From sequence record NC_062582.1: a stretch of DNA of 64,000 bases. One strand, 5' to 3'. The position numbers and the translations under genes were made by a program. Positions 39,010 to 39,924 of this stretch are shown here, piece after piece. A model generated the notes under the pieces. That model was not told where the DNA came from. It saw nothing but the letters and a program-made list of their open reading frames with translations, and did no database searches. How positions within the stretch are numbered: the stretch's first letter is position 1; every line of letters starts with the position of its first letter.

Positions 39010-39053
39010 TGAATTATTCCTTAAGGAGGAGTTAGTAAAGATACATAAAATGA

Positions 39054-39494
39054 GTGGTTAAGTCCTTAGTACCATTAGAAGCATTTATAAGCCTATATTA
39101 CATACGTGAACCATCGACGTTAGTGGAGGGTTTTATGGACAGCGATAATGTATTAATGACGATACGCAGAACCAACGTAAGTTGGATTCTAAAATACCTG
39201 TTGGCTATTACTTCAGGTGCCAGTCACGTTACCATAGAGGAGAAGCCAGAATGCACTAAGTACTATTGTTTAGCTACTGATCGTACAGTTATACTACATA
39301 CCGAAAAGGATCATCACCTAATACACTTCATGAAAGGTACGCAAGATTTCCATACGGAATACTTTTCACTGAGTGTAGATTTCAATTGTGTCGTGACAGT
39401 TCCAGCGGAATTGATAATTAAATATCTTTGCGCTGGTATTGATAAACGCCGTACAATTGAATGGTTGAAGATCTTAAAGGAACTCAAAGAATAG
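39054..39494 (+). CDS. hypothetical protein
   Basis: 146 aa; GTG start; AT-rich. Confidence 0.55.
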   Translation: MVKSLVPLEAFISLYYIREPSTLVEGFMDSDNVLMTIRRTNVSWILKYLLAITSGASHVTIEEKPECTKYYCLATDRTVILHTEKDHHLIHFMKGTQDFHTEYFSLSVDFNCVVTVPAELIIKYLCAGIDKRRTIEWLKILKELKE

Positions 39495-39504
39495 AGGTAA
39501 CATT

Positions 39505-39630
39505 ATGTTTTCTAGAAATGAGCTAATCGGTTATACTTTACTGTCAGCAACGCTGATAACAGTTGGCGTGACAATGGTTGTAAAAGGAGTACAGCTTGGT
39601 ATAAAAACTGCAAGGAATAGTCAACCGTAA
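39505..39630 (+). CDS. 41-aa single-pass membrane peptide
   Basis: Read by eye: MFSRNELIGYTLLSATLITVGVTMVVKGVQLGIKTARNSQP; GAGGT RBS; terminator follows. Confidence 0.65.
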   Translation: MFSRNELIGYTLLSATLITVGVTMVVKGVQLGIKTARNSQP

Positions 39631-39636
39631 TATTTT

Positions 39637-39676
39637 GGGCTACCTTCGGGTAGCCCATCTTTTCTTTATTTTTTTG
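39637..39676 (+). terminator. intrinsic terminator
   Basis: GGGCTACC-TTCG-GGTAGCCC plus long T-rich tail. Confidence 0.85.
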
Positions 39677-39709
39677 TTTAAATAAATAACTTACTCAAAG
39701 TGTAATGAT

Positions 39710-39830
39710 ATAGACAACGGCAGAACGCGCAAACGGCGCTGCTTACGAGGAGGTGATCCATAACTCAGTCGTACTCCATATAGCGAACTGTCGGGAAGAC
39801 AGCGGTGAGTACAAAGGGTGCCTTGTCTAT
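39710..39830 (+). ncRNA. candidate structured non-coding RNA with a 16S-3'-end-complementary segment
   Basis: ORF-free, GC-rich interval between two terminators; closing stem ATAGACAA(C)GGCA/TGCCTTGTCTAT; inner GTACTC/GAGTAC and CTGTC/GACAG stems; AGGAGGTGATCCA at 39748-39760. Confidence 0.6.
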
Positions 39831-39863
39831 TGATCTGGCCTATCTAATCGGATCGGTATACTT

Positions 39864-39891
39864 GCCCAGCCTCAGGCTGGGCTTTATGCCG
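39864..39891 (+). terminator. terminator of the hairpin-TTTATGCCG family
   Basis: GCCCAGCC-TCA-GGCTGGGC-TTTATGCCG. Confidence 0.75.
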
Positions 39892-39924
39892 TCAATAGAT
39901 TTTTTTCTAAATCTATATTACGTA
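39880..39924 (+). repeat. 45-bp exact repeat of 21929-21973 (terminator tail plus promoter)
   Basis: GGCTTTATGCCGTCAATAGATTTTTTTCTAAATCTATATTACGTA at both sites. Confidence 0.85.
39892..39921 (+). promoter_or_regulatory. putative early promoter
   Basis: TCAATAGATTTTTTTCTAAATCTATATTAC, identical to the copy at 21941. Confidence 0.75.

Follow-up and report, generated by a model that had tools for sequence, protein, structure and literature searches.

In this work, we have used sequence comparison and covariation analysis to examine a 64,000-nt stretch of DNA, called the window throughout, which forms part of the genome of Pseudomonas phage Phabio (MF042360; record NC_062582.1), a 309 kb jumbo phage whose host is P. 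fluorescens SBW25. Position 39500 of the window corresponds to position 225500 of the record. Between genes PHABIO_298 and PHABIO_299 lies a 319-nt gap that is free of annotation in MF042360, and the element in this gap is one member of an unannotated family of structured non-coding RNAs (ncRNAs) present in phiKZ-like Pseudomonas jumbo phages. The family's most conserved part is a stretch complementary to the 3' end of the host 16S ribosomal RNA (rRNA), and phiKZ-like phages probably make an RNA that docks on the ribosomes of their hosts. The parts of the element in Phabio are as follows.

39680-39713, plus strand: promoter-like region, with an A-rich run (39680-89), TACT (39692-95) and AATGATATAG (39704-13); the predicted start is at about 39714-39716.
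39714-39888, plus strand: predicted ncRNA of about 145-175 nt, with a short form that would end after P4 at about 39858 and a long form that would end at the terminator.
39712-39722, plus strand: 5' strand of helix P1, AGACAA-C-GGCA, which pairs with 39819-39828.
39727-39739, plus strand: P2 hairpin, GCGC AAACG GCGC, with CG/UA and GC/AU covariation.
39747-39760, plus strand: left arm, GAGGAGGTGATCCA, complementary to 16S nt 1528-1541, that is, to the anti-Shine-Dalgarno (anti-SD) sequence and the single-stranded tail.
39771-39812, plus strand: P3 domain, with an outer helix formed by GTACTC (39771-76) and GAGTAC (39807-12), and containing P3b.
39788-39802, plus strand: P3b hairpin, CTGTC (39788-92) with GACAG (39798-802), loop GGGAA.
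39813-39828, plus strand: junction J3/1 and 3' strand of P1 (the right arm), AAAGGGTGCCTTGTCT.
39832-39854, plus strand: P4 hairpin, with loop GCCTATCTAAT.
39864-39892, plus strand: terminator (hairpin 39864-39882), GCCCAGCC TCA GGCTGGGC followed by TTTATGCCGT.

A sequence-only reading of the window had singled out this site as a structured RNA isolated between two terminators, lacking both an open reading frame (ORF) and a usable start codon, and carrying a 13-nt perfect complement to the 16S 3' end that is far longer than any ribosome-binding site in the window. Our analysis bears this description out. The 13-mer, AGGAGGTGATCCA, occurs a single time, at 39748-39760 on the plus strand, and when one G.U pair is counted the complementarity begins at 39747 and reaches 14 nt. 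The other exact matches to the complement of the 16S tail, in the 64 kb and on both strands, are of 9 nt at most and mostly of 7-8 nt, and the neighbouring Phabio genes have ordinary Shine-Dalgarno (SD) sequences of 3-6 nt, with energies of -2 to -10 kcal/mol. The Pseudomonas 16S 3' end, checked in genomes including those of P. fluorescens and P. putida, reads ...GTCGTAACAAGGTAGCCGTAGGGGAACCTGCGGCTGGATCACCTCCTTA and is followed by the spacer sequence ATCGACG. No ORF of more than 43 aa overlaps the Phabio region, and the sole start codon near the motif is a GTG that lies within it. Upstream, a canonical intrinsic terminator is found at 39636-39657; the downstream hairpin belongs to the phiKZ type of terminator. 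The stems that had been drawn from the single sequence are those which we call P1, P3 and P3b.

The element has relatives in other phages. BLAST with the Phabio region produced weak matches, confined to its 5' third, in parts of the phiKZ, phiPA3 and PA1C-group genomes that carry no annotation, and these matches always adjoined a divergent SNF2 helicase gene (the virion helicase). Using this gene as an anchor and reading the adjacent gaps, we found copies in 201phi2-1, in the P. syringae phage D6 and in Psa21, and the pattern of conserved blocks led to seven further copies in viral or metagenomic contigs, four of which measure 310-317 kb. The family comprises 16 members (phiKZ, phiPA3, PA1C-like phages, 201phi2-1, D6, Psa21, Phabio and the seven contigs), of which 15 are distinct and serve for the pairing counts given below. 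All 16 lie near the SNF2 helicase gene, whose protein is 50-67% identical to that of Phabio. An initial collection pattern, ATGATATAG..GGTGATCCA, was discarded; it gave mostly chance matches, and only those in phiPA3, PA7 and Phabio were genuine. A covariance model made from 15 sequences recovers every member at 65-126 bits (in Phabio it matches 39709-39831 with 65 bits, E = 2e-13) and, in some 650 kb of unrelated loci, matches nothing else. In five outgroup phages (OBP, an EL-like phage, Goslar, Ea35-70 and DT01) the sequence up to 4-8 kb from the helicase gene, the only neighbourhood searched in these genomes, holds no homologue. In pPa_SNUABM_DT01 there is, near the helicase, a 500-nt G+C-rich gap without ORFs and with several strong hairpins (L094 1881-2393), unrelated to the family.

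Searches against known RNAs gave no counterpart. Rfam had no match in the window at gathering thresholds, and permissive scans of the Phabio region and six homologous loci returned terminator-like noise only; ARAGORN detected no transfer RNA (tRNA) or transfer-messenger RNA. When the complement of the 16S 3' end was compared by BLAST with 50,697 phage records, a long antisense match in non-coding sequence appeared in no other group. LUZ19-like phages (for instance NC_010326, 23906-23926) have a 20/21 nt match to the 16S complement, GGTGATCCAGCCGCAGGTTCC, which in phiKMV-like Pseudomonas phages falls inside the gene for the scaffolding protein; its E value is 5, so that it is probably due to chance, and many near-identical genomes have it in common. 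An apparent second family of like design, in two metagenomic contigs of 69 kb (L108) and 201 kb (L144), was rejected, as these are bacterial rRNA operons whose spacers carry 16S-3'-end-like sequence in sense orientation. In both contigs (L144 7629-7725; L108 819-911) this second 16S-3'-end-like sequence, CAAGGTAGCCGTAG..insert..CTGGATCACCTCC, lies about 270 nt past the Rfam-called end of the 16S gene, and it may represent an intervening sequence or a duplicated 3' end.

Covariation supports a common fold. MAFFT combined with RNAalifold had mis-registered helix strands, and we used a hand-set structure, a covariance model and a model-based realignment. In this alignment 82% of the cells are paired, against 72% in shuffles, changes on both sides are seen in 10 of the 20 pairs, and the covariation score is 0.272, compared with at most 0.088 when the partners are slid by 1-3 columns. 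Four helices have covariation support, one of them carrying a GNRA loop. In P1 the outer pairs covary (A-U, U-A, C-G, G.U) and the core, AAGG/CCUU, is invariant; the P3 helix appears as GTACTC/GAGTAC, GATAC/GTATC, GGTAC/GTACC or ATGAGC/GCTCAT; and P3b is capped in most relatives by a GNRA tetraloop (GGGA, GAGA, GUGA, GCGA) on covarying stems. A hairpin is kept at the position of P4, with differing sequences, in Phabio, phiKZ, PA1C, phiPA3 and 201phi2-1, and it is short in the D6/Psa21 group. Covariation, the promoter and terminator, and the lack of an ORF conserved across the family agree with a structured non-coding unit and not with a ribosome-binding site, as had been supposed from the single sequence. 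Other parts of that proposal fared differently. Alternative pairings of the type TACGA/TCGTA had been thought to switch the motif between hidden and exposed states; this pairing is present in Phabio and, as a shorter ACGA/UCGU, in the Psa21-like group, and is absent from the phiKZ, PA1C and 201phi2-1 types. The sequence-only reading therefore stands as regards a discrete structured ncRNA with conserved 16S complementarity, and falls as regards the hide-or-expose switch.

The left arm occupies the junction between P2 and P3, and consists of the invariant segment 5'-GG(A/G)GGUGAUCCA-3' and, around it, flanks that are partly conserved. Each of the 15 distinct members is able to pair at the bases opposite 16S nt 1528-1541. 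Those opposite nt 1525-1527 pair in 14/15, the exception being Phabio, and in 14 of the 15 the arm enters the 3' strand of helix 45, as had been suggested for the flank of that helix. The arm varies at three positions, opposite U1541, U1537 and G1526. Only A or G is found opposite U and only C or U opposite G, save for the Phabio mismatch opposite G1526; such switches exchange a Watson-Crick pair for a G.U pair, and the pairing is thereby kept. Past nt 1523, and past the mature 16S 3' end into the spacer, pairing falls to chance level. Including G.U pairs, the contiguous arm measures 14 nt in Phabio, against 17-21 nt in the other 15 of the 16 members, and the energy of its duplex with 16S is -25 kcal/mol in Phabio and between -33 and -37 kcal/mol in the others; freeing the motif costs 5-10 kcal/mol. 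This pattern is the one predicted by selection for pairing with the mature 16S tail.

The element also has the appearance of a transcription unit of its own. An A-rich run, TAC(T/G/A), a distance of 13-14 nt and TATAG precede, in this order, nearly all 16 members. The phiKZ middle promoter, as described in Wicke 2021, has TACT centred 22 nt before the start and an A-rich repeat ahead of it, and the listed phiKZ middle promoter P116 (AATAAAAATACT...ATATA) resembles the sequence upstream of the phiKZ copy (AATAAAAATACG...ATATAG). From the promoter spacing we infer that the RNA would start at the first base of P1, at about 39714-16 in Phabio and about 212856 in phiKZ. The downstream terminator was missed by a scan for T-runs; it fits the phiKZ-type motif, a hairpin followed by YTTATKYYGT (PMC10914365), and this motif is found in all members. 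In the supplement of the phiKZ ONT-cappable-seq study, the plus-strand 3' end T095 is placed at 213001, 4 nt past the P4 hairpin of the phiKZ copy; T095 lies within the phiKZ element and so provides published evidence of a transcript end there. The next gene is preceded by an early-promoter-like sequence of its own, AAATCTATATTAC, in Phabio, phiKZ, D6 and Psa21, and in PA1C it is convergent, on the other strand; for these reasons the element is not a 5' leader. Taken together, promoter, fold and terminator support a discrete, independently transcribed, structured non-coding unit with a predicted middle-type phage promoter and a phage-type terminator.

Several observations concern the surroundings of this unit. 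In Phabio AAATCTATATTAC is at 39909-39921 on the plus strand, just upstream of PHABIO_299, and it follows the RNA also in several metagenomic members; it agrees with the listed phiKZ early promoters (..GATCTATATTAC..), and therefore the small genes downstream are probably early. The phiKZ late promoter P107 (transcription start at 212808, ..GCTAATCTTATG) accounts for a conserved AAGATTAGC block upstream of the RNA. PHABIO_298 (39505-39630, plus strand) is an ORF of 41 aa whose core, LLSATLITVGVTMVV, is hydrophobic, and the terminator at 39636-39657 directly follows it; its product may be a small membrane peptide, and the ORF is absent from the corresponding position in phiKZ. The 5' region of the helicase gene (39010-39055, minus strand) reads ..CATTTTATG..AACTCCTCCTTAAGGAATAATTCAATG, in which CCTCCTTA, beside the helicase SD, matches the final 8 nt of 16S exactly; about two 8-mers of this type are expected by chance in the window, D6 is without CCTCCTTA, and phiKZ and PA1C carry CCCCTTAAGGA there. 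In phiPA3 (NC_028999, 216444-219605), PA1C (L003 1-1438), BRkr and HHBS36_1 the helicase match is split in two over about 3.15 kb, compared with 2.1 kb, and in phiPA3 and the PA1C group the gene is annotated as two coding sequences or as 'DarB-like'; an insert of about 1 kb, which could be an intron or a homing element, seems to split it. In HPP-Temi (PP968062; L096 322-417 and 515-604) two annotated ORFs of about 30 aa, HSP1_CDS0188 and HSP1_CDS0189, overlap the RNA on the opposite strand and are probably annotation artefacts.

What could be the role of this RNA? We propose that it is a conserved ncRNA of phiKZ-like jumbo phages whose invariant segment pairs with the tail of the host 16S rRNA, and we give this reading a probability of roughly 0.55. 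Pairing with the 16S tail is the mechanism best supported by the comparative data, and its occurrence in vivo is deduced from them. The RNA would be transcribed from the middle-type promoter and would fold into P1, P2, a variable GNRA-capped P3 domain and P4. The segment at the P2-P3 junction would then pair with the terminal 14-21 nt of host 16S, that is, with the anti-SD tail and, in most members, also with the start of the helix-45 3' strand. In this way the RNA would occupy the anti-SD of 30S subunits, and would go untranslated because no start codon or ORF follows the complementary segment. Once docked, it might act as a competitor of SD-dependent initiation, or in some other way mark host ribosomes or keep them occupied, while infection is in its middle phase. 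A decoy, a protective device and a block to assembly are the candidate consequences, and we put all of them forward as suppositions. A broader version of the proposal, which we hold only tentatively and would not bet on, is that of a dedicated ribosome-targeting antisense RNA, probably arisen by capture of a reversed host 16S 3' end, which binds the anti-SD tail, perhaps even the whole 3' minor domain, and, in the course of infection, re-programmes, protects or parks small subunits of the host.

A number of points weigh against pairing with the 16S tail as the function. Single-sequence folds partly bury the motif, differently in each member, with a mean unpaired probability of 0.34-0.57, and the predicted partners differ in every member. 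In mature subunits nt 1523-1529 of 16S are in helix 45, so that only about 13 nt are freely accessible. Ribosomes far outnumber most small RNAs (sRNAs). The phage genes nearby rely on ordinary SDs, and a global sponge would thus harm the phage too. The known hosts all have the same 16S tail, which precludes any covariation on the side of the target, and the invariant 12-mer could instead be a site for a protein. The phiKZ ONT-cappable-seq tables list no plus-strand start near 212856, and neither a transcription unit nor an ncRNA candidate at this place, and manual inspection of Grad-seq data reported only two phage ncRNAs, both different from this one. The depletion of rRNA may also remove an RNA complementary to 16S, and this could explain why it went unnoticed. 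Finally, overproduction of the cellular RNA rreB, the one analogue that has been studied, which has 17 nt of 16S complementarity, had no effect on growth (PMC5711450), a result that speaks against a simple global decoy.

Among the other explanations, one makes use of a second, weaker likeness to 16S, which came to light once true 16S genes turned up reverse-complemented among the metagenome matches. In the relatives the right arm reads CUACGG(U)(A/G)CCUUG(U), which resembles the complement of 16S nt ~1500-1514, and in some members the match reaches nt ~1487; the complement of 16S 1487-1514 is CUACGGCUACCUUGUUACGACUUCA. By local alignment against shuffles, in which the members are not independent tests, 8 of the 16 gave p values of 0.002-0.05: 0.002-0.007 in the PA1C group, 0.004 in L099, 0.02 in D6 and 0.03-0.05 in phiKZ and phiPA3. 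In Phabio, 201phi2-1 and others the match was not significant. The PA1C right arm, CTACGG-TGCCTTG--ACGACT, aligns with CTACGGCTACCTTGTTACGACT (p = 0.002), and that of the contig L099 is CTACGG-TACCTTGT (p = 0.004). The distal pieces that are kept in register differ by lineage, such as ACTTCA in the contigs L100, L102 and L104. The two arms look like what decay has left of an antisense copy that was once longer and spanned about 55 nt of 16S, the P3 domain having taken the place of the helix-45 tip, and we take this as no more than suggestive. The likeness of the second arm could be a relic of this origin or could reflect a second contact.

On these grounds the RNA might be a two-armed antisense molecule acting on nascent, immature, cleaved or degrading 16S and not on the mature 30S subunit, which we regard as unlikely. 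The left arm would pair with nt ~1523-1542 and the right arm, after strand exchange in P1, with nt ~1487-1514, opening helix 45. As a result, late 30S assembly or 3'-end processing would be blocked, the 3' end would be protected against exonucleases or ribotoxins, or broken ends would be held together. In PA1C, L099 and D6 the right arm is indeed collinear with the 16S complement, in register and in the correct antisense order; the retention of different distal pieces by different lineages, the entry of the left arm into helix 45 and the P1 core, invariant and not covarying, would also fit. However, beyond the members without a significant match, an energy-based duplex test of the right arm was not significant and is uninformative, as shuffles scored equally against the G-rich target, and in the free RNA this arm is held in P1. 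Past the mature 3' end, in the spacer, there is no further complementarity, which argues against a precursor rRNA as the target, and the benefit that a lytic phage would draw from blocking ribosome assembly is not evident.

A somewhat less probable explanation is that the invariant segment serves as an SD mimic or as the binding site of a protein from host or phage, for instance bS21, S1 or a phage ribosome-associated factor, or that it pairs with another RNA, the 16S match being a by-product. An absolutely invariant 12-mer is typical of recognition by proteins, the SD/anti-SD duplex mimic of OLE RNA binds bS21 (PMC12054373), and the presence of a GNRA hairpin and of an invariant core in P1 points to a defined tertiary fold or a ribonucleoprotein. 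Nevertheless, the substitutions seen within the core and next to it are just the ones that preserve G.U or Watson-Crick pairs with 16S, and the complementarity stops sharply at the 16S terminus. A duplex mimic of the OLE P6 type was rejected, since no conserved CCUCC-like internal strand was found. The same holds for a sponge of RsmA/CsrA, for which the several conserved GGA motifs in loops are lacking: arms of the phiKZ type read GGGGG, without GGA, and GGA occurs in the P3b loop of some members only. The G variant of the arm destroys GGA yet keeps the pairing with 16S, which also argues against an RsmA-type site.

More improbable is that the element is simply a relic, an ancestral capture of the host 16S 3' end in antisense, kept only as part of an RNA whose function is not ribosomal. 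The two collinear arms with their replaced helix-45 tip would be accounted for, and the capture of rRNA-operon pieces by phages is known: the T4-like Aeromonas phage AP1 (254 kb; MT713136, 233818-234080; L279 2765-3027) has 25/27 nt of the 16S 3' end, followed on the same strand by tRNA-Ile and tRNA-Ala, that is, a captured piece of a host rRNA operon spacer. A relic should decay evenly, whereas here 14 positions pair in all members while the rest has diverged beyond recognition by BLAST, and the changes that are seen preserve pairing. As to a strong ribosome-binding site for a tiny or non-canonical ORF, as in rreB (a 17-nt SD followed by a 14-codon ORF), or a cis-acting leader or attenuator, which the position upstream of a same-strand gene in Phabio and phiKZ would favour, this reading is essentially excluded, because the only start shared by the family is the GTG within the SD itself (spacing -1), which opens unconserved frames of 4 to 44 codons, because GUC, GCC or AUA stands where the rreB start would be, and because a terminator and a separate early-type promoter precede the next gene, which in PA1C is on the other strand.

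If the pairing of the invariant segment with the 16S tail does serve to target ribosomes, this RNA would be the first of its kind in phages, and the first natural trans-acting RNA, from phage or bacterium, that has the mRNA-capture sequence of the ribosome as its conserved target. In nucleus-forming jumbo phages transcription is sealed off from the ribosomes. To our knowledge, only proteins, such as phiKZ gp014, have so far been found to contact the host ribosome. An abundant phage RNA occupying the anti-SD would add a new layer to host takeover and would parallel, in nature, the synthetic anti-SD oligomers. The family includes the best-studied model, phiKZ with PAO1, for which gradients, proximity ligation, antisense knock-down and phage genome editing are in use. 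It adds, moreover, an unrecorded structured RNA with covarying helices and a GNRA hairpin, which may be a phage gene derived from host rRNA. In the literature that we searched there was no description of this RNA, nor of any phage RNA aimed at the anti-SD, in agreement with the statement of the sequence-only reading that no such phage system had been described.

How does this RNA compare with known systems? Ordinary and extended mRNA SDs share its partner and the core GGAGG, and the phage element differs from them in a complementarity of 14-21 nt, with -25 to -37 kcal/mol, after which no start codon comes. The sRNAs reported earlier in phiKZ and 201phi2-1 (the PHIKZ298 3' untranslated region, the p40 5' untranslated region, and sRNA005 upstream of the gp182/gp277 tail gene) come from the same phages, are short structured intergenic transcripts, and have the same types of promoter and terminator. 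They belong to other loci and have other sequences, and none of them has been reported as complementary to rRNA. With the U3 small nucleolar RNA and other RNAs pairing with pre-rRNA there is a likeness only if the RNA acts through two arms, as two separate antisense segments could hold the strands of an rRNA helix apart. U3, however, is eukaryotic, protein-bound and essential for assembly, whereas the phage RNA has no box motifs and its complementarity ends at the mature 3' end. The P6 element of OLE RNA (PMC12054373) is likewise a case of a structured ncRNA that reuses the logic of SD and anti-SD sequences to reach the translation apparatus; OLE has both strands, as an internal duplex, and binds free bS21, whereas the phage RNA has the SD-like strand only.

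The closest parallel is found in the rreB and rreR small mRNAs of alpha-proteobacteria, which are about 165 nt long and complementary to the 16S 3' end over 16-17 uninterrupted nt (Hahn et al. 2016, PMC5711450); rreB co-sediments with 30S subunits and occurs chiefly together with them. The phage RNA is of similar size, and in both cases the complementarity goes far beyond that of a normal SD, with 17-21 nt in 15 of the 16 phage members and 14 in Phabio. In both, the complementary region is partly folded in prediction, and in the rre RNAs it is predicted to open on binding. The rre RNAs are cellular and have a conserved ORF of 14-18 codons, whose start lies where the complementary region ends; the phage RNA, in contrast, is phage-encoded, has no conserved ORF, adopts a different and larger conserved fold with a possible second antisense arm, and shows no homology to them beyond the shared target. 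The RNA family described here is unrecorded, and its kind, an RNA with extended complementarity to the 16S 3' end, is already known from the rre RNAs.

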